Below, piece after piece: positions 20,653-38,555 of a DNA stretch of 64,000 bases. Position 1 is the stretch's first letter; each line of letters starts with the position of its first letter. This stretch comes from Ophelia neglecta (Eukaryota): the NCBI GenBank assembly GCA_965285935.1, contig OZ260663.1:87048001-87112000 (forward strand). The letters run 5' to 3'. The notes below the pieces were generated by a model, which was not told where the DNA came from, made no database searches, and was given only the letters and a program-made list of their open reading frames with translations. The position numbers were made by a program, and so were the translations under genes.

Positions 20653-23047
20653 ATCTAGTGATAAGGTTATAGTCCTATTGCAACCGAAATTATGATGACA
20701 AACACTGGTCAATGGTTGAGGTCAAATGGGGTCAATGTACCCCGATCTAAATCCCCTCAATGAGTAGACTCTATGAGAGACTTGTGCTATTGTATAACGC
20801 TACCGCGACAATCGAAAAGACACCGAAGCTAATGATTATTGTGAAAAAATAAAGGGTTCTATACAACGAGTAAGACTCAGATATACACGCGAAAAGGTTT
20901 CCTAGGGGGATGGAAACATGGCTCGGAATTGTTCTTTTTAAGCAAATGATTATGCACACATACTTTATCTGTGTAGAGCTGTGCCTTTTTCAGGCGTTTA
21001 GCGGAAAAACCTCTGTGCACTGGAAAATGGTGCAGTCTCCTCCAGAAGAACGCCTTTTCGACGGGGTGGGCAGTTTTCCGATCTAAATGTGTTCTGAACT
21101 CGACTCGATAACCATTATTGACGGCGCTAGTTTCTAGTTACAATTGTTTTACACCTACTCAGCAAAGGAAGGCTATGGGTTTGGGAGATTCTTTGCGCCC
21201 ATCTTAGGGCTAGGGGCGTATTATCGTTAGACGAAAGATGTTACTTGTATAAACCAGACGCCTTGAACGAAATGAATGCTAGAATAAGAATAATTTACAC
21301 ATTTAAAGAATTTCAGTCTTTCATAAACATTGTCTTAACACAATTCACACAAATAACACTATAATAAACCTTATTTTTTCATTAAATTTTTTATGTACCT
21401 AACATAATACTTCCATCCTTATAAATAACCACATGATACTCTACATATATTAATATCAAAACAAAGGATATCACTAGTTTTCTATAAATACTTTCACTTA
21501 GGGTGTAAAATAATACCAGCAGAGTGATACATAAAAAAACATTAACATAACAAGGAGCATGGAGCCACATATATAAAGGCGAGGAACTTATACTTTCTGC
21601 GTTATAAACCGATCATATTTGTAACTATTTTATCGTATAAACTCAAACAAATAATATTGCAATACATGTGCATGGTATGTCACAGATGGCTAGGGCAAAG
21701 CGCTAGTGCATATTTGTTGTCCCCGTTGTTTAGATGTTTAGGACAAAAGAAAAAACGTGCATGGATGCGAAAATAACTGAAAAATTCCTGATCTCGACAA
21801 ATAGGCCTATAGCTCCCCTCTGAAAGTGGGAGTAACAAACTTTGCGTCATGTGAGGTAGCAGGTACCGCCGATAGGACCACGATCAGTATCATGTCATGA
21901 AAACACTAATTCCAAATACATGTAGCTTCTTCCTATGGGTGCGTTTGTTTACGCCGTAAATCTGGGTATACTGCATACAACATCTTGTTTAACGTCTTAG
22001 TTCGCTAATTAGGTTGCATAAATATATCTAGTTAAAATTTAACATCGTTTAATCGCAGGTTGAAGTAATAGCAACATGATATGGAGTTTAACCCTGCAAT
22101 TTATATTAGCAGGTTTTTTGGTCGGTTAGAATTTCAACCTTATTTAGCATGCGCTTGGTGTTGTACATCTGGGCTAGGTATTGTGCAGCGGCTATTATTT
22201 GACGAGCTATGGTATAGAAAGTATTTTTATCGATCGTCCGAACTGCCAAGCTTACCGCAAAAGCATTTTTTGTTTGCTTTTATTCACCGTTGCGGACACT
22301 CCGAACACAATCAATTGAAATGTTTGCCGAGTAGCCCGTCGTATAAATTTACCTTTGCACACTGGCTTTCAGTGAGGAAAAATCGCATGCATTCATTTTG
22401 TACTTGGTAACTTCACGAAGATAATGCCCTTGCTTTACTTGGGTCATGTCACGGATTTTACTGGATCCATTAAGGGGGTAAGCGTCTCTGGTAGCATGTT
22501 AGCAATAACGAGTTATAATCCGTTTGAATTTAAACAACAATTGTGCAACAGGACAGTGGTTATTCTAGTTAGTTTCGCGCAAGGAACGACGGACGAATAG
22601 CGTGGGTAGCTGTCCGTGACGGACAAACGACTAAATCAGCATAGCGGCGACAGCCTACCGCACCCACCAAACTATTGACCCAGATAGGCATAAAAACCAC
22701 GATTCGTTCTTTATTCTTGATTTATTTTCCTCCAACTGGTGAGGTTGTATGATAAGGCACTATTATACATATAACGGTAAATAGACGGTATTTTCCATCT
22801 GGCCAAATACCAGATATGCATATACATAGAGGTAAATGATCACGGTAAGTCTTCAGTCGCGTATAACGTGGACTTTATTGATATCATTCACCTTTGTACA
22901 CGTTATATAAATCACGAGTGACTAAATGTGTAAAATCTTTATCCATTGCCAGATTGATAGATGGTTACACCAACACCACACAGAGAATCGTCAATGCTCT
23001 ACGAGGCATAGACCTTTGTTTTGGATGGCATCTTGCATCCTCGAACC

Positions 23048-25808
23048 ATGGCAATTATTGCCTTATTTCTAATCACCCTGATTTATAGGGGACAGTGTGC
23101 AATTCCCGACTGGCTAGTGACAGATGTTCAAACCCGCACTAATATAACACAAGTTGGTATAAACAAAATACGGCTTGGTAATGGTCTTATTGCCAGAGAT
23201 TTTGTACTGACGCCAGACTTTGCCACTATCGACTACTACTCGTTTGAAAAGCAGTCATCTCTGCTACGGGCGGTGGGGCCGGAAGCAGTGATCTCTCTTG
23301 ACGGCATTGTTTACAATATTGGCGGAATTAGGACCAACATTTCCCGGGCGTATCTTAACCGCACTGCGCTGGCAGAGGACCAGAGCTACGATCCAACTGC
23401 ATTCCATTTTGTCTCTTACAAAATCGCCAAGCCAGAAGCTCCATTTCCATACTCACCAAAAAGAGGTGCTCCAAAGGATATTGTGTGGCCCCCAAAAGGA
23501 CTGAGATTGGATGTTACATTTAAAGCTCCATTCGGGGCCCCAATCTACCACAAGATGATCACTGTTACCATGCACTATGAAATGTATGATAACCACCCTA
23601 TATTGGCCAAGTGGCTCACTTTGAATGCCCTACCCGAGGCAAAAAGTAAAGTGAAAGCATCTATATACTCGGTTGAATATTTGGCTGTCAACTGGCCATG
23701 GGCGGATGCTGGTTATGGGTGGTTATTTGTACAAACTGACCAGGCGCATGGTACCAGTGTGACTTGGGGCATTGATCCTGCTGCAGGAGCCAGCCCAGGG
23801 TCTTTTGAGCAAGTCGTGAACTGTACATACCAAATTGTACCAACTATTATTTTGGATGACACGCTGGTCTCGTTCAAAGTTATGGAACTTGTTGCCGGAA
23901 CATCGGACCCAGAACGGTTTGGTTTAGCCAAAAGGAAATTAATTCGACTGCTTGCACCACATACTCAGGAAAACCCTATCTTTTTTCACATGGTGAAGTC
24001 TGATTCTAAATCCGTTAGAATGGTCATAGATCAAATGGCTGAAGTTGGCTTCGAAATGATGATTTACAGTTTTGGCTCTGGATTTAACATAGAATCCCTT
24101 GATGACTCTTATATTGAGAGTGTTGCTGCTGATATTTCGTATGCTAATAAAAGAGGTATCGAAGTTGGGGGTTATGATCTGATAGCTTTGACCAGAGTCC
24201 CTCCCAACCCAGACTGGCTTGCGGTAGGAGCTTCTAGGAGTGCTTGTTTTGCATCAACTTGGTATGACTTTCTAGTGGACAGATTTATGAATTTCATGAA
24301 TCGCACTGGACTGAGTATGGTGGAAACAGATGGACCATATGGTGGCTACCCATGCAAAGCTACCCATCACCCGCATCACCAAGGTTACCATGATTCAGTG
24401 TACATGCAAAACAAATTACAAGGTGAATTCTACAAAATGCTTAGAGAAAGAAGTGTTTATATCAATCAGCCTGATTACTACTTTTATCAAGGTGGCAGTA
24501 AAACAGGTATGTACAAAGAGAACAGATATAATAATACATAACACTTAATCAAGTTTATTGTTTTCATACCGTAGTCATAACTTTTATATATACATTTCAC
24601 ATATGCTATCGGCATCTACTTATTTGTTGTATTGAACATATACGGACTGGTTTTTTTTAACTCGGGCAACTTGCATGTGTATCGAGCAGTGCAATTGCAA
24701 ATGTTTACATTTCAAAGTGTTTTTGTTGAAGGGAATAAGGATGTCATTCTTTCGTTATGATAGTCACTGTGCCACCTTGAAAAATGAAACTATCTGATGG
24801 AAATTACTTTTGATAAAATGAATAACGGTTAACTAAATTTCATTATTAGGATAATATTAAGAGTCCCAGAATCCAAGGGAATTATAGTGGCCTTTTAATT
24901 TTAGGGTCATGTTTTCTTGTCAAATGCTCACAATTAGCTGTTTGCAGTACAATTCCAAAATGGAAAAATAAAACCAGCTAGTTTAGAGTACTTATATTAT
25001 AAAATAACAGTTGACTAAATTTCATTATGTCGATGACAGTTCCGTAGATAGTAGGCCCGTCCCCCCCCCCCCCTCCCCTTGACTTCTTACCATATAATCA
25101 TTACCATTCATTCAAGGGAATTATAATGACCTATAAATTCGGAGGATTATGTTTTCTAGACACGTTTATTGTTAAAAGCTTCTTTCCATTGCAGGCATGG
25201 GATATAATGAGCACCAGTATTCTCTTCCGCGGTGGCAAGACATAAGTATCAGTCGACAGGGTATGTATGATGACACTTATCATTATATTCCCTCAATCGG
25301 ATGGATGTTCGTTCCTCTAGTGGACTATCATGGAGGTGGCGCCCCTGCAGCTTTCGAGCCTCTCACACAACATATAACAGAGTATGAGTGGGCTCTAGCT
25401 CAGTACTTAGGAGCAGGAGTAGCAGCTTTTTACAGAGGCTACCGATTGTATGACAGCAATGAAACAAAGGCACTTGTCCAGAAATGGGTGACATTCTATA
25501 AAACCTACAGAGATATTCTCAACTCAGACTTGATCCATGTGATGAGGGCAGACATGCAGGGAATTGACAGTTTTATGCATGTTAACCCTAGACTGACCAC
25601 AAAAGCCTTGGCGATGGTGTTTAATCCTACATCAGAATATATTCACCAAAATATTACTCTTCCTCTCTATTACACAGGTTTGACAGGAATTGTTAAAGTC
25701 TCCGAACAGAACCAAAACCCACAGATATTTTCCTTGGACAGACAGTACCAAGTGGATATTGAAGTTGATCTTAAACCAAAAGGAATCACTTGGTACATTA
25801 TACGATGA
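23048..25808 (+). CDS. Secreted glycoside-hydrolase-like protein (resembles bacterial 'alpha-galactosidase'-annotated TIM-barrel proteins), copy A, 690 aa
   Basis: Exons 23048-24506 and 25195-25808 (phase-1 intron, ACAG|gtatgt...ttgcag|GCATG) total 2,073 nt = 690 aa. Signal peptide MAIIALFLITLIYRGQCA. Motifs WPPKG, ENPIFFH, VGFEMMIYSFGSG, ETDG, GWMFVPLVDYHGGG, YRGYRLYD. The enzymatic function is inferred. Confidence 0.8.
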
Positions 25809-29456: not shown

Positions 29457-29700
29457 GGCATACTGGAAAAGCTGATACGAAATACCAGATACGAGACGCA
29501 GATACGAGATACGAGGTGTTTAAAACGTAGCCATATGGACTAGGTTAGGGTTAGGGTGAAGTGTTAAGTAAGTTATGATTTAGTTAGGTTGCTAGCTTAA
29601 CCCTACCCCTAACCCTGTCATAATCTAACTCAATCTTAATTTTTCGTATCTGTGTATCTCGTATTTCCTTCGTATCTCGTATCAGGTTTTCCAGTATGCC
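29457..29700. mobile_element. 244-bp MITE with 9-bp TSD (Mutator/MULE-like) and internal telomere-like repeats
   Basis: TIRs GGCATACTGGAAAAGCTGATACGA / TCGTATCAGGTTTTCCAGTATGCC. TSD TACCTGTAG at 29448-29456 and 29701-29709. Subterminal GATACGA repeats; internal TTAGGG/CCCTAA units. Confidence 0.9.
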
Positions 29701-30660: not shown

Positions 30661-31889
30661 CTAGGATCGTGCATTATGTTGGTTCTAGAAACCACACCAG
30701 AGAACTTTGACAAATGCCACATTTGAAACATATATTCGACATAAATGTCTATTTAATTGGTACGTTTATTTTTAAGCATAGAGTTGGCTTGTTGCCTAAC
30801 ATTTCCAATCCTTTTGTTTCTTTTTGTGATGACATTGGTGTGTATAATAAAACATGGAATAGAATGGTCTACCTACAAGGTTCCTTTCTGTAAAACCTCA
30901 CTGAGGCAGGATACATTGTTGGTTGTTCGACCAAATGTATAAAACTCCTTGGTTATGGGAGAAGATATGTTACTGTGTGAGTCATTTTATGGGGAAGCTA
31001 AAAGTTGCCTTATTGATCAATGCATCGAATTAAGTTTGATTTGTTGTGAATTTCGTACATAAACATATATTCCTAATTATGCTTGCTCTATTGTCGAGCT
31101 GAATAATATTTATCTAGAATGTTTTATAAAACCGTTGGCGTATGTTTCTGAAACATTTTTCTGCACTATTATTATTGTTGTATTAAGATAGAGGATTATG
31201 TTTATTATGGAAATACACACACACACATTGTGTTTTAGTTTACATTTGTCTTTTAATATTTGTGTATAAATCAAAGGATATCAATAAATGATATATGTAT
31301 GTGAATTACACGAGACAATAATTACCAAATACTCTTACCACTGATGTATTTCCCAAGTCTCGGCTGATATGGACATGTGTGTCTTTATTGTGTGGTACGT
31401 GCTTAACTGCATTGACAGCACATTGCATAGCGAACTTTTGGTCCTTGATTTACTCCAACTAGTCCAACATCCAACTAATTGTCACATGGTCAATAACGGG
31501 TCCTTTGTCTAATGATATCATATCGTCAATGTTACTTTTTATGCATACAAACTGAGTAATTACAGATTTACTATAACTTGCTTGGTATATCCAGCTATAG
31601 CTGTGAACTTTGCCTGAGAAAACGTACAATTCAGCAGCTATAGCTCCGTCAAGGTACGTATGGCAGACACAGCCGTCAAGCTGACAAAAGAATGATAGGA
31701 CAAATCACGTTATATTTTGCATTCGTTTGTATTGCTGTTATATCATCCATGCCACATGGTTGGTAGTTCGCTACGATTTCGACACCACAAGTACCAGTTT
31801 ATAATACACTCAGTTCAGCCACGTACCGGGTAACATAGCCTATATTTTCTTTACTGGGCGTATTCCACAATATCTGTAGTGTGCTATAT

Positions 31890-32052
31890 CAGGTCCGGTA
31901 TTAACCGCCGATTGAAGGGTACTGTTTTGATCCAAGGATGGCACTAAGATTCAAGTGAACGCCTTCCAACGAAGTGCTATACTTCGATCGAAGTATGATA
32001 CTTCGATTAAAGTATATGCACATGCGCACTGGTCATTTCCGCCGTCTGCTAA
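31890..32052 (+). repeat. Left terminal inverted repeat (163 bp)
   Basis: Reverse complement of 38556-38718 with one mismatch (GCACTAAG vs GCACTTAG). Confidence 0.97.
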
Positions 32053-32559
32053 ACATGGGTGCTGATGTTGCCACAAAAGCACAATCTCGTTGAATTCGGT
32101 AAAAATATGGTATGGACATTTGATATTATCTGATGAAAAACACAGAAATTGAAGTATTACTTATAGAGACATCATATTAGGGGCCTAGTGTGCCGTATTT
32201 CAACACAGCTTTCACTGGTAATATTCATCTGTTGGGAGCCTGTATTTACATATGATTACATGGCTTCTTTGCTGTAGGGTGACCAATAATTAATATTGAT
32301 TATTGTATATTCCGACTGGAATAATAATACATACTTTACTTTATTGTGTAGAAAAAGTACTATTCTTTTTACCTTGCAAAGGAATTTGGTGGACATAGCC
32401 TGGAAAAAAAAAAAATACACTGGAAAAGTGCCCAATTTTGCAACGTTTAAATTGTGTTTTTCCCAACAATCAGACACAGACCTCTGTTTGCTGGTTTGCT
32501 GACTTTATTCTGCTTTACCAATTAATACTAAATACTTGTTTTCAGTATCTGGGTTGATC

Positions 32560-35500
32560 ATGGAGGGCCATAATCAGGTTTTAAAAAGCACATGTAGGGT
32601 GTGCGGAAGGAAAAGGGACATTTCGAGTTTGAGGACAGTCACTTCCGCATCTTCATTAATTAAAAAAGTCTATAGTCATGACATTAGCACAGATGTTAGT
32701 GGAATACATCCAAGCCTGTGTTGTCTCTCATGCCTCAATATTTTAAGAAGATGTGTCAAATTCAAACAGAAAAAAGGTGGGCCAAGACCAAGTAAAAAAA
32801 TTCCTGGCTTGCAGGATTTTCAACCACATGGGGAAGGATGCAGTTTGTGTGAACCTCATGGCCCTTATGAACCATCACAGGAGGTATGGCCTAAGTGTAA
32901 AATTTAGTGATAATAAATTTACATATGTTAATTATATGTTGATTATAATGTTTATATATTCAATACATATAAATGTATTTATGTTTATATAAACATACTT
33001 TGGTCACTGTTATTGCAGGCACAATGTGAAATGTCTGACGAAATATCAGATTATGATACTTCCACAGAGGAAGATGACCCACAAACAAAGAAAAAACAGA
33101 GGATGGCATATATTGATGCTGCCACGCAAACCGAAATGGGTTATGAGCAGAAAACTTTACTCCAAACCCACCGGCGTTTTAGTCACAATGAAACTCAAAC
33201 TCAAAGTACTGTGCTGGTGCTTGACCTGGCCAACCTGGATGAAACTTGTTTTAATGACTTGTCTCCAGAATTCCGCTTCAAATTGTCACATGCCCTGGGA
33301 AAATCCCAGAATCAAAACATAAAAACTGATAGTATGAATCTTTCGTCAGGCAAAGATCTTGATTCACTCATAAACCTGGATTTGTACAAATTTCTAAGGC
33401 ACTGCAACATTGTGGTGGTTGGATTTCTCCTGGGCATTTCTAATAAAAATGTTGAGTTTTATAACACAAGAGTTCAATATGATGAAACAACACTTTATAC
33501 TCTATGTAAAAGTGTTGAAAGTGTCTTGAATTTGTCTGCATACAGGTGTATAATGCCCCTGCACTTCAGGGAGAGTTTGTTAATATATTCCATAACTGGC
33601 AGTCGTTTGGCCCTGTCTGTTCTAGCCTCAGGCTCATCACATGGTGGTTATTTAAGTGTTAGAAAATTTTTGTCTGACCTTGCTGAAAACAGCTCTGAAG
33701 AGACACTCCCAGGTAATATCATGTATGTCTTTGACAATAACCAGATACTTCACAGGTCGTGGAATGTGAATTTGGAAAAGAAATTTATGTGCCACATCGT
33801 GACAATGGTGGCACAGTTTGCTCTCGACAAAGACGGGACTTGGCAGTGGAAAGAAGACATGAGACCTGGGATATGGATGCTCAAAGAAACACCAAATACA
33901 AAAACTGTGAGAAAGTTAGATCAAGAACGAGAAGTTAGAAAGTTGCATTATGATGAACATCTCTATCCCTTCCTACGGGCAATGATCACAGAAGTAGCTA
34001 CAGAGCAACAGGAAACTGAATATAATAAAGAATCAGACTCCTCTGTGTTTATGGATGATGTAGATAGGTGCATAGAAAAGAAGAAAAAGGAACAGAACTT
34101 CAAAAGTTGTCATGCATGCGGAGCTCAGGAAATCCCCAAAGCAAAAATAAAATGTCCTTTGTGTAAGCAAAACCTGAAACAGGCAGAACTGAAAGCCCAA
34201 GGGTTAACAGCTCAAGGTACATGGGAAGAGAAAAAAACAACTAAACAGTCCCGAAAGGCAAAAAAGTACAGAATTTCCTTCTACGAAGAACAACCTGATA
34301 CCTTTAAGGTGGAAGTAAAAGAAATGGTGTCCCCAAGTGAGAGTATTCAAGACATCAATGAGTATAGAGTTGGGGAGCCTGTATTTGTAAATCCATGTTC
34401 ATATGAAGCATGCACTGTAGTGATGCGGAAAATTGGTCACAAGGCTGGAGTGAAAGTGTATGGGGGAGAACGTGAAGTAGTCTGTATATGTTGCGATGGA
34501 TCTCCATACGTTTTGTGTTCAAGGTTAATACTGTCAACATTCTTGTGTACAAATTGTAGAGAAAGTTGTGATGGCATTGGCGACAGTGATGAACACAAGA
34601 AAGCACATATTGGAAAGGGGGAACAGTGCCAAATGGTAAGGGAATTTGACTGGGTTCTACTTATTCCAGGACCAGGGCATCTTGAAATGAACATGGTCAG
34701 AGCATTTGTTGAGCTGACATGGGAAATATTTTGGCGACCCCTTGCTCACCTTATGAACTTCAAGAGTGACACAGCTTTGAGGGCGGCAAAACGAGTATCA
34801 GATCATCACAAGGGATGGCAGTTTTGCATTATAGCAAGGGAAGCACTGGTGAAGGAACTAGTTTTGCCATGGGTCAGGCAACAACTGCAAAACTCCAAGC
34901 CTGATTTATCTCCTGATACCTTCTTGAAGTTTGTTATGGGTGATGTAAGAGACCACACATATGTGATGATAGCAGACCTGGTTTTTGAAATTTTGGATGC
35001 AATTTTTATGTATCGTGAAGGAATTCGTGACGAAATGCCAGAGGTGGCATATGCAGCTAGGGCGAAGATTGCAAAACTGTGGAGTGGCAGGTCTCACCCA
35101 AGCTACAGGGAAATTGAGATGACAGACAGCATCATGCTTTCTAGGATGCCTGTTGAGCTCAGAGAAAGAACCCTGAAATGTTGGTCTGTGAACACTTCAG
35201 GGAGAAAAGGAACTAGTGAAGGAGGTGATTTCAAACTAGAACAAATAAACAAACAGACTCAGGCTTGGCTTCCAAAAGTGCCAAGTGGGCAAGATTGGAA
35301 AACAGTTTGCCTAAACTACAATTCACTTTCTGGGCTGAGAGAAAAAACTTTAAGTCAGTTAGGCATAAAAGATCCCAAAGCCTTTGAGTCGCACAAGCAA
35401 AAGACAATGGGAAACGAAATTAAGGCTTTTCGTGCCCTAATAAAGGAAAAGGAGTATCTATCTCATCCAGAGGTCAAAAGAGAAGTGGTTTCCTTAGAGG

Positions 35501-35964
35501 GTCAGAAACTTAGTAACAATTTAGTAAAGTTCTGTGATATGGCAAGGGAAATCAGAGCTCAGTATTTTGACAAGTACATAGAATATGAGCAGGAGCGCAC
35601 CTTCCGCAGATCCAATGTGCCTTTTAGCCATATACCAGTCTTTGTAACTACACAGGAAGAGGATGAATACAAATCTGTACATTCAAGGACTGTGAATGAG
35701 CTTAAAGCCATTATTAGTGAAAAGATACAACAAGTAGCAGATTCAGAAGCAAAGGATGCTTTTGAATCAGCTTTTCAAGGAAGGCTTATCTCTATTGATG
35801 ACCAAGCTGCACAGAGCACAGTTAGTGGAAGAAAGACAAAGAAAAGGTTACTGAAATCAGATTATATTGAACTGTTTGAGGAACTCCAGGAGTATTTAGA
35901 TTTTCAGGACAATATGGCAATTCCACCAGAAATGGAAGAAAATGATGCTTATGAGGACGGGTAA
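32560..35964 (+). CDS. Putative DDE transposase, 1,089 aa, with N-terminal RAG1-CND/Chapa-type zinc domain
   Basis: Exons 32560-32883 and 33019-35964 (GAG|gtatgg...ttgcag|GCA, phase 0, in frame). Exon 1: H..L...CRVCG...LIKKVY..D...DV..IHP..CC.SC...F.PH...C.LC. Exon 2 is uninterrupted: VFDNNQ (D at 33733), C4 ribbon CHAC...CPLC, CCDGSPY (D at 34495), CTNC, PGPGHLEMN (H at 34678), GGDFKLEQINK (E at 35239). Confidence 0.85.
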
Positions 35965-36535
35965 TTATGTTACCATCACAGTGATTGAATACCCATAATT
36001 TACTTTGATGCTACATCGAGTATGGTAATACAAATTAACAGAACATATTTTCATAAAAACAAACTGTTCCATGCTAGAAGCTGAGAGAAGCTGAAACTTA
36101 ATGCTAATAAGAATTAAAGAAAAAGCAGTTAAAACTCTATTTTCCCAACAAGGAGCCACTTTATTTAGCATGTATTACCAAGTGAAATAACATAAAAAGG
36201 GCATATGTTTATAATTGCAACACTTACTATGTGCTGACAATCTGAACAAGTAGATGTATTTTAAAAGTCAAAAGTCAATTATGACTTCAGCATCAATGAA
36301 TATATCTATAGTAGCAAGACTGGCTTGATATCTTATTTATGTGGTGACAATCTCATTAAGTCGACAGTTAAACACTAAATATAACTCAAAAAGAAATGAT
36401 ATGTCACTCCTGACTTCAGAATTAAAGAATTATTCTCTAACTTAATATTTACTTTTCCTAAAAGTTTGCAGCAAAACAAGTGTGATGAATGATGTCTACT
36501 CTAGCCTTTCACAAGCAGAGGTCATAATGGCTGAT

Positions 36536-37519
36536 CTAATCATCATAACAATCTTGACAAATAAACCCATCGTCTTGGCCCATCCCACCGCAAGACCTGT
36601 GACATGTATTGCCACATTGTTTCAGGCAGTATGTCCAGTCATTTATGTGGCAATCGTTGTAGGACCCAAAACATATCACGCAACATAGAAGGGAACCCGC
36701 AGTAATGTTCTGTATCAGCTCCTGTGCTTCACCTTCGACCATCACACCCTCCGCCTGTGTAGTATCTTCGGTCTCTTGGGTTGCATGATGTTCAGGTTGA
36801 TGACTAGGACCAGCCTCTGCATCGTCAGCACTCGGCTGTTTTCTCTTCTCCTTTAAGTCATCTAGAACCTTGCGCAGGCGACTGCGAGTGGACTGATCAC
36901 TTTTACGCCCCTCATTTTTGGGGTCCAGCCTTTTTTTGCTTTGGCTAGCTTTTGGCCTCTTTGGTGAGCCATTCTCAGTGTTTTGGGTTTTTTTTGCAGA
37001 CTCTTTTCCTACAGGGGTTTTGGTTTTCACAAAATTTAAGTCCCCTTGGAATTTTTTGCTTGGTGTCGGATAAACTGGGTCCACTGACACTTCCACAACA
37101 ATGTCGGTAATTTCCCTATCTGTGTCTTCTTCTTCTGCCACTGGAACATCTGGGCTGGTGACAGTATGCTTTATCACCAGCCTCTGCCCCCCCTTGTACT
37201 GGATGGATGACAAATTTTGCTCCTGCAGCTCCCCCCCCCCACTTCAGTGAACCCTATTCTTTGTGTTGCCTCTCCAAATGAGACATGTAAACCCTTGTCT
37301 ATTAAACTATCAAAGTCTTCGTCCTTACTGCAGTACACATAGGTGTCACCATTTGGTTGTCGGAGCAAAATAGAAACCGATCCACCTGTGGTGGATATGA
37401 GTTCATGACCTTTCCGAAATAAGGTTCCTCTGCGAGTGGCCCTGGTCTTATTGCGCTTAACTGGGTCCTGTATGAATGATGAAGAGTGTGGCCCACTGTG
37501 GTGTTTCCACTTCTCATAC
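36536..37519 (-). CDS. Transposon accessory protein: SRF-type MADS-box domain, low-complexity linker and C-terminal PHD finger (one frameshift at a G10 tract; 5' exon(s) uncertain)
   Basis: Acceptor ttacag|G at 37519. MADS-like FIQDPVKRNKTRATRRGTLFRKGHELISTTGGSVSILLRQPNGDTYVY. The frame changes at C10 (37231-37240) into ORF 36536-37213, which ends CVIC...DWTYCLKQCGNTCHRSC...FICQDC (C4HC3). Confidence 0.78.
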
Positions 37520-38555
37520 CTGTAATTAATAAATGCATAATCTGTCAGAGACACCTAGATGTAGTAAGAAAATGTACTACATGTACTTAGCAACTGCGAA
37601 GAGTCCAATTCAACATTAAAACATATTGGTTCTTTGCCAGATGTGTTCTCTAATTACGTGTATTGTTTTATTAAATGCACAAAGAATAAAACTACACTCA
37701 TATTTAATATGGTATAATTTGATAAATTTGATAATTGCTGGTAATTATCATGCCACATTATATATGGTAGTACAGTTAAAAATGCTCACCTTGCATTCTC
37801 TTCTCTTGACTAACTGTCAGTAGGGTGGACTCTTAGCCTAGTCCTTGACTAATGCCTTAATATACATGGTGCATAAACTAGGTACTTAATTATGTAAGTT
37901 GCTGAATCGATCACATAAGAAACATGCATTAAATGATTGGCACAGGTATCCGATTGTAATCTCATTTAGGCCTACTATAATTCAGAACTGAAACTTTAAA
38001 CATTATGTTAGCTGAGCTCGCCTTTGAGGGCCTTCTTTTTCCATTTCACCTTGCTTTCCTTGGCCCTTGGCTATTGGACAGAGTATTACTGAAAATTGGA
38101 GCCTACAGTATGTTAATCAATTCGCAAAGTTCTTCAGAACAGTTCCCAGCATGTTTATTCTAGGCTGAACAGGCCAAATTTGATGCCAAGATACACATAT
38201 TAATAAGCAATGTCCACAAATAAGACCTATATAGAATTGCAGAGCAGTTTTCAAAGTACAAGGCACATATAATATTTTGAAAAATGGGTTGTCGGAATGT
38301 GCTTCAAAAGGTAATTAATCTCGCCTACCCAACAGAGTCTAACAGTGTCTAATGTACTATGGGATATTGCTTCTATATACTCTGATACTAACATGAAAAT
38401 ACTTCAGACAGCTAAGTGACATGTGCATAAATAGGTCAAATTAGTTTCCTTATACATGAAACTTACGGATAACCATGAAAACATAATAAGAATAATATTG
38501 AATCAACCTTAAAAATGAATTATTTTAGCGTTTCCACAGATCCGACATCAATTGA

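Follow-up and report, generated by a model that had tools for sequence, protein, structure and literature searches.

The window analysed here, that is the whole stretch of 64,000 nucleotides of Ophelia neglecta (contig OZ260663.1, positions 87,048,001 to 87,112,000 of the forward strand), contains a 6,829-bp DNA transposon at positions 31890-38718. Within this element, a short open reading frame (ORF) at 32560-32883 encodes a zinc domain of the RAG1 NZD/Chapa type and lies just upstream of a long ORF for a predicted transposase core. The ends of the element and the parts of its transposase gene, in coordinates of the window, are the following.

31885..31889, no strand: left target-site duplication TATAT, repeated at 38719-38723.
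31890..32055, + strand: left terminal inverted repeat (TIR) of 166 bp, beginning CAGGTCCGG (repeat pair I1, 99% complementary to 38553-38718).
32560..32883, + strand: coding exon 1, with a complete two-zinc NZD/Chapa domain in 108 codons and the type I ligand pattern (PF12560, PDB 21WB).
32884..33018, + strand: predicted intron of 135 nt, GT..AG, phase 0 (reading of the sequence and drop in GC content).
33019..35964, + strand: coding exon 2, 981 codons plus stop, with a linker, the predicted DDE/RNase-H-fold transposase core and C-terminal helices (homologous clusters, AlphaFold, P-element fold).
38553..38718, - strand: right TIR (repeat pair I1).
38719..38723, no strand: right target-site duplication TATAT (flank comparison).

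The transposase gene and the element that carries it

The exon 1 ORF extends for 324 nt on the + strand from the ATG at 32560, and its peptide is the one quoted in an earlier note on this DNA. That note had described a separate phase-0 exon with a clean, in-frame splice to the long ORF, and the geometry it proposed was found to be right. A GT is present at 32884-5 and an AG at 33017-8, and exon 2 opens at 33019 in the frame of a 983-aa ORF (33013-35964). When the intron is read unspliced, translation meets a stop after 8 codons (ORF 32536-32907, in-frame stop at 32905-7). With 0.41 in each of the two exons, the GC content drops to 0.21 in the intron between them. A splice from 32883 to 33019 is plausible from these features. 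In all the searches reported below exons 1 and 2 were used separately, and never as one joined protein. A pyrimidine-rich stretch (window 32530-32559) ending in AG was also observed, 14 nt 5' of the ATG at 32560, and because of it the NZD exon may be internal, with a non-coding exon preceding that ATG.

Copies of the element were searched for in the genome of the same species (762 Mb). Two full copies, the one in the window and a second one on C7, and three internally deleted copies (on C1, C2 and C8) were retrieved, at 99-100% identity. The alignment of the two full copies contains 24 differing columns, and both exons are open in each of them, with a single amino-acid difference in exon 1 (S39G) and three in exon 2. 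Perfect 5-bp target duplications (TATAT, AACTA, ATAAA and TGTAA) flank four of the five copies, the duplication of the fifth being of 4 bp. The termini of the element read CAGGTCC...GGACCTG, hence CAG..CTG, and meet only the looser CA..TG pattern. The element is very young and recently mobile, and is apparently autonomous. Short palindromic repeats built on ACTTCGATCGAAGTAT were observed inside each TIR, at 31963-32016 (repeats I4, I5, I8 and I14) and at 38593-38645; these are candidate protein-binding sites.

The zinc domain and the catalytic core

The exon 1 domain had been identified in the earlier note as the RAG1 NZD/Chapa-type zinc domain, and the profile search bore this out. The peptide matched the Pfam importin-binding family of RAG1 (RAG1_imp_bd, PF12560) with an E value of 1.7e-10 and 41.4 bits, above the cut-off of 23.3, over profile positions 138-208. 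It also matched the NZD of mouse RAG1 (PDB 21WB) with an E value of 6.1e-6 and about 30% identity over 69-73 residues. In the alignment with 21WB, residues C12, C15, C55 and C58 correspond to mouse C110, C113, C175 and C178, and residues H4, H90, C94 and C97 to mouse H102, H206, C210 and C213, thus all eight zinc ligands are retained. According to the part of a preprint dealing with the mouse domain (bioRxiv 10.64898/2026.01.24.700457), the former set of mouse residues forms ZFa and the latter ZFb, and "type I" is the name given there to the ligand pattern of the Chapaev domain, found in RAG1L too. The ligand set of the exon 1 peptide fits this type, with a ZFa of four Cys and a ZFb made of an N-terminal His plus His, Cys and Cys.

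Between the first two aligned blocks, only 6 residues are present in the exon 1 peptide versus 28 in mouse RAG1. The missing stretch of about 22 residues fits the description of helix H2 as a jawed-vertebrate addition to the NZD, given in a section of the same preprint (bioRxiv 10.64898/2026.01.24.700457). The peptide also showed a weak match with Pfam zf-AD (E 0.0033), which is consistent with the resemblance between ZAD and the ZFa of the NZD reported in that section. The Atlas clusters nearest to the exon 1 peptide bear RAG1_imp_bd. No RING family was matched by Pfam at E <= 1 in either exon 1 or exon 2, and the absence of a RING, already remarked upon in the note, holds for both exons.

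As for the core, a search of a library of 1.84 billion proteins with the exon 2 protein returned 1,384 related clusters (E <= 1e-3), and its conservation was examined in two alignments, one of 38 long relatives (A1) and one of 75 relatives (A3). Residues D239, E556, H597 and E613 are invariant in both alignments, and D493 in A1, its column in A3 being nearly so. Hardly any variation is seen at D737, E741 and N744, which do not vary at all in A3, and C510-x2-C513 and H526 are conserved in at least 90% of the relatives. The motifs of the core map as follows.

33733..33735, + strand: D239 (FDNNQ), putative first catalytic Asp (invariant column; model strand 233-244).
34108..34164, + strand: CxxC...CxxC zinc ribbon within the catalytic domain, C364-C382 (four Cys nearly invariant; weak zinc-ribbon matches).
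34495..34497, + strand: D493 (CDGSPY), putative second catalytic Asp (conserved column; after model strand 488-492).
34546..34596, + strand: C510-x2-C513 ... H522-x3-H526 finger between the second Asp and the Glu (conservation; weak matches with C2H2 structures in the PDB).
34684-34686, + strand: E556, alternative catalytic Glu (invariant in A1 and A3).
35227..35241, + strand: D737-F-K-L-E741 motif, candidate catalytic Glu (conservation; inside the DUF6589 match).

The catalytic Glu, either E556 or E741, is suggested by the range of the alignment with the P-element transposase described below. The finger formed by C510-C513 and H522-H526 is contiguous and has the spacing of a classical C2H2 finger.

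In exon 2, Pfam recognized DUF6589 alone (27.5 bits, over the D737-E741 region), a family that is also found in 20 of the 38 long relatives, and no match was obtained in the NCBIfam search. The AlphaFold models, with a predicted local distance difference test score (pLDDT) of 88.3 for the whole exon 2 and of 91.6 for residues 136-790, have their strands and helices in the order typical of an RNase-H-fold transposase. Since the VIA search with the whole protein was dominated by matches of the C-terminal helical hairpin, the core was folded separately. The best VIA-align score of the core was with the Drosophila P-element transposase (PDB 6P5A; Z 11.4 over 352 residues, root-mean-square deviation 5.7, identity 10%), followed by ISCth4 (Z 8.9), Hermes (Z 7.6), Tn5 (Z 6.9), RAG1 (Z 6.5-6.6) and BbRAGL (Z 5.8). 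Foldseek did not retrieve any PDB match at E <= 1e-3 with either of the AlphaFold models. No P-element or THAP family of Pfam was found in the protein of the element or in the 38 relatives, and the likeness with the P element is one of fold only. The KDZ elements (Kyakuja/Dileera/Zisupton), raised as a candidate by the partly fungal DUF6589 clusters, were rejected, as their duplications are of 7-8 bp and no KDZ match was found by Pfam.

The RAG1 core family PF12940 was not matched by Pfam in the protein of the element. When the family profile was compared with the sequences in the PDB, matches were limited to the NZD chain and to zinc ribbons, with no RAG1 or Transib core chain among them. The hhalign comparison between the core family and a RAG1-core-like ORF of the same genome gave a probability of 0.4%, single-sequence hhalign being weak at such evolutionary distance. 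On the evidence of its models, the core is a DDE/RNase-H-fold transposase without detectable sequence similarity to RAG1 or Transib, and the non-RAG nature of the core asserted in the note is in accordance with both the profile results and the lower fold score of RAG1 as compared with that of the P-element transposase.

Two N-terminal fingers in one transposase family

The association of an NZD with this core was found well beyond the window. PF12560 was detected by Pfam in 10 of the 38 long relatives, and a jackhmmer profile revealed an NZD in 17 members of a set of 175 family proteins that includes many fragments lacking their N-termini. The closest full-length relative, P0152 (58% core identity), combines NZD and core in a single polypeptide and retains all the ligands, and the database relatives nearest to the element are molluscan. 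In the same genome, an NZD ORF lies upstream of the core in two paralogs, one on C12 (55% identical) and a decayed one on C9, and the intron of the former appears to be located about 10 codons earlier than that of the window element. Moreover, in a P0032-like lineage on C8 (L019 289-1887, - strand; L034, C8:1545000-1554900), 54-73% identical to P0032, one uninterrupted, intronless ORF of 532 aa encodes both the NZD and the beginning of the core. Clear inverted ends were looked for in this older, NZD-bearing C8 lineage and not found.

Seven PF12560 matches were found in the genome, namely four copies of the window element, the C8 lineage and two orphan fragments. The RAG1 core family PF12940 has 14 matches in the same genome, the best with an E value of 1.1e-76 and one with an open ORF of 574 aa (examples are L026, C8:1035740-1037647, and L027, C8:1113310-1114764), and none of the seven PF12560 matches adjoins any of them. 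As far as these proteins and loci tell, the pairing of NZD and core is of old date and widely distributed in the transposase family.

A homologue of the NZD, the Chapa domain, is described in Chapaev transposases in the relevant part of Kapitonov & Koonin 2015 (PMC4411706), where it is also stated that no other transposon has it. Chapaev is likewise named, in the portion of the preprint concerned with non-RAG lineages, as the sole one that consistently retains the NZD (bioRxiv 10.64898/2026.01.24.700457). The earlier note had proposed that the domain was shuffled among transposase superfamilies. This claim was not supported by the family-wide occurrence of NZD and core, and no such shuffling is needed because NZD plus core is the architecture already published for Chapaev with its Chapa domain. 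This outcome comes near to the one that the note itself had named as refuting its claim.

A different finger was found in the first ~75 residues of relatives at about 38-46% identity (P0155, P0158, P0154, P0003, P0006 and others). This finger, here termed CHCC (C-x5-H-x2-W ... P-x-F-C-x2-C), is present in 23 of the 175 family proteins and is matched by no Pfam family. The hhalign comparison of NZD and CHCC yielded a probability of 0.9% (E 0.062), with a weak alignment in register over the helix-plus-CxxC part, and CHCC, with one zinc, might be related to the ZFa half of the NZD. Since the similarity of these relatives to exon 2 restarts directly past the CHCC finger, the finger junction matches the exon boundary of the element.

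Trees of the core were obtained from 75 rows under LG+G4 and, as a quick tree, from 38 rows under LG+C20 with posterior mean site frequencies (PMSF), and the same nesting was recovered in both. The window element, P0151, P0152, P0153 and the own-genome paralog C12 form a clade with a support of 99 in the Shimodaira-Hasegawa-like approximate likelihood ratio test (SH-aLRT). This NZD clade sits within a larger one (SH-aLRT 99-100) whose other typed members all carry the CHCC finger, and the enclosing clade is in turn sister (SH-aLRT 99) to the group of P0155 and P0158. The tree of the NZD itself, built on a short alignment, is poorly resolved, with the three NZDs of the clade standing apart from all the others (80/69). 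Of the separate trees for domain and core envisaged in the note, that of the core places the NZD clade among CHCC carriers; the NZD alignment was too short to resolve its own history.

These results indicate that the N-terminal module has been replaced at least once inside the family, in one direction or the other. The exon-sized mobile module of the note survives in this weaker form, within one family and not among superfamilies. A more specific explanation is that a CHCC-bearing ancestor gained the NZD exon by recombination from another NZD element, the exon being a mobile module within a single family. The nesting of the NZD clade in both core trees is what such a gain would leave, and a clean split between NZD and CHCC carriers obtained a p value of 0.038 in the approximately unbiased (AU) test with 38 rows under C20; the same test gave 0.346 with 75 rows under LG+G4, and the tested groups were defined after inspection of the tree. 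The two fingers are not detectably homologous, the point of the swap coincides with the exon boundary according to where the similarity of the relatives restarts, and the NZD is separated by an intron in the window element and fused in the C8 lineage, all of which agree with an exon gained. On the other hand, the NZDs of the clade are not nested in any donor clade, and no CHCC-type copy was found in the own genome, where no match spans residues 1-73 of P0155. We consider that a gain of this kind is possible, although somewhat unlikely.

Relation to known elements and significance

The reading that we prefer, with a probability of roughly 0.7, is that the element represents the Chapaev/N-RAG-TP type of architecture in an intact and recently mobile form, and is not a new capture across superfamilies. 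Chapaev transposons were reportedly described by Kapitonov & Jurka in 2007, and the molluscan N-RAG-TP by Panchin & Moroz in 2008. Following this reading, the element (31890-38718) would be a very young DNA transposon of the cut-and-paste kind whose transposase gene has 32560-32883 as its first coding exon, and the domain of this exon would contain two interlocked zinc sites, one made of four Cys and the other of an N-terminal His together with a C-terminal His-Cys-Cys. Removal of the 135-nt intron would fuse the NZD to the DDE/RNase-H-fold transposase, which presumably binds the 166-bp inverted ends, excises the element and inserts it by means of a cut staggered by 5 bp. The NZD would act as an accessory zinc module outside the active site. 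In RAG1, mutation of the NZD ligands reduces recombination, which is still present.

By published descriptions, the element can be likened to Chapaev and N-RAG-TP in several respects. It has an N-terminal NZD/Chapa domain with type I ligands on a transposase, and a predicted DDE core without RAG1/Transib-like sequence. The Cys-x2-Cys and His-x3-His pairs (C510-C513 and H522-H526) lie, as a contiguous C2H2-like finger, between the putative second Asp and Glu (D493 and E556 or E741), a place where C(2)C and H(3-4)H are reported for the DDE core of Chapaev in parts of two papers (PMC12730594, PMC4079192); homology with the CMC motif was not supported by the hhalign comparison with an EnSpm-type ORF given below. 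The CA..TG termini, the short duplications and the animal hosts, mostly invertebrates, are shared. In view of its deviating termini and duplication length (see below), the element is termed Chapaev-like here and is not classified as a Chapaev transposon, its equivalence with the Chapaev of Repbase being presumptive.

A number of points weigh against this reading. The splice is read from the sequence itself, and P0151, the closest relative (59%), starts at a point matching the start of exon 2, which could reflect either a missed exon or a core-only protein. If the latter applied to the window as well, the NZD ORF would be unjoined to the core, either coding for a small zinc protein in its own right or lying dead upstream, and translation of the transposase would start from the Met at 33031, where an ATG is indeed found five codons into exon 2. 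This is hard to reconcile with the clean in-frame GT-AG intron and its sharp drop in GC, as well as with the eight ligands shared with P0152, in which domain and core are one protein. Fused NZD-core ORFs occur in the same genome, and in the 55%-identical paralog C12 the NZD ORF has been kept upstream of the core. We regard an unjoined NZD ORF as very improbable.

A second point is that the closest relatives beyond the small NZD clade carry the CHCC finger, and for this reason vertical inheritance of the NZD is not the sole reading. Furthermore, the 5-bp duplications and the CAG..CTG termini break two hallmarks of Chapaev, which are listed in the pertinent part of Zhang et al. 2014 as 3-4-bp duplications and invariable CAC..GTG termini (PMC4079192). 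The hhalign comparison of the core family with an EnSpm-type (CMC) ORF of the own genome gave a probability of 0.4%, and membership of the core in CMC or Chapaev does not follow from sequence comparison.

These last observations would be accommodated if the core belonged to a separate, unnamed superfamily tagged by DUF6589. The NZD would then be present on at least three unrelated cores, and shuffling across superfamilies would be right after all. The divergent duplications and termini, the missing profile similarity to both the EnSpm-type and the RAG1-like ORF, the P-element transposase as the best solved fold (Z 11.4 over 352 residues) and the Cys/His motif in the form of a contiguous C2H2-like finger are in line with this idea. 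However, single-sequence hhalign is weak at this distance, and CA..TG termini and short duplications suit the wider CMC/Transib grouping, for which duplications of 2-5 bp are given in part of one paper (PMC12730594). In the corresponding part of another, they are of 2-4 bp in the CMC group and of 5 bp in canonical Transib (10.64898/2026.08.26.747230). It is improbable that Repbase would have overlooked a family of 1,384 clusters with an NZD in many of them, and outside RAG1/RAG1L Chapaev is stated, in the passages of the two sources that address the point, to be the sole lineage with the domain (PMC4411706; bioRxiv 10.64898/2026.01.24.700457). A separate superfamily is in our opinion unlikely, and the Chapaev-like architecture remains the preferred reading.

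The element carries a second gene in convergent orientation.

36536..37554, - strand: second, convergent gene, with an SRF-type MADS-like N-terminus and a Cys/His-rich, PHD-like C-terminus (Pfam SRF-TF).

Its match with SRF-TF (E 9.5e-6) is slightly below the cut-off. In the window copy, two surplus bases in the G run at 37231-37240 lead to two overlapping frames. The C7 copy has a single frame of 338 codons, and DNA contigs from three sequencing runs show the letters of C7, without the two surplus bases in the G run.

In the surroundings, short inverted-repeat units adjoin the right end of the element (window 38725-39136), one of them with perfect arms of 36 nt and a G13 run. A related unit was observed at window 29457-29700 and another on a different chromosome (L034 2616-2852), and these units look like a family of miniature inverted-repeat transposable elements (MITEs). 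A two-ORF gene (about 506-537 aa plus 203-243 aa) is present in near-identical copies at 23021-25808 (+ strand) and 42769-45349 (- strand), which are inverted relative to each other and flank the transposon region.

When the whole element is compared with known systems, it differs from Chapaev and N-RAG-TP in its 5-bp duplications (instead of 3-4 bp) and its CAG..CTG termini (instead of CAC..GTG), as well as in the TIRs of 166 bp, the NZD on its own exon, the lack of a RING and the second convergent gene. The NZD of RAG1 is similar in that the eight zinc ligands align and the Pfam family is the same, and the helix-H2 stretch is absent as it is in invertebrate RAG1L. Unlike in RAG1, the NZD of the element is found on another catalytic core, with no RING/ZFA after it. 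With Transib and ProtoRAG, the element shares 5-bp duplications and a pair of convergent genes, with a Cys/His-rich finger at the end of the second one, but its core is not RAG1-like, its ends are not heptamer-like and its second gene is MADS-like and not a Kelch propeller. Among solved structures, the one nearest to the core is the P-element transposase (PDB 6P5A). The element differs from it in having neither a THAP domain nor a P-element Pfam match, and in its duplications of 5 bp, those of the P element being of 8 bp.

The bare observation of an NZD on a non-RAG core is already published. A stronger claim would be that the NZD is a truly portable, exon-sized module and that this lineage swapped another finger for the NZD exon, which we consider doubtful. 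If it were true, the element would be a living model of how the RAG1 ancestor could have gained its N-terminal zinc domain, being young and apparently intact and having RAG-like 5-bp duplications and a convergent second gene with a PHD-like finger. With it, what the NZD does in a transposase would become open to experiment for the first time. The structure of the RAG1 NZD dates from 2026, and in the part of the preprint concerned with limitations the authors state that the domain has yet to be tested experimentally in RAG1L or in Chapaev (bioRxiv 10.64898/2026.01.24.700457). With its two near-identical intact copies, fresh deletion derivatives, clear ends and type I domain, the element may serve as such a test system. 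Finally, a single core with two alternative N-terminal fingers would help to decide whether the NZD of RAG1 and Chapaev was inherited or acquired, and the presence of an intron between NZD and core in some cases and not in others bears on the same question.

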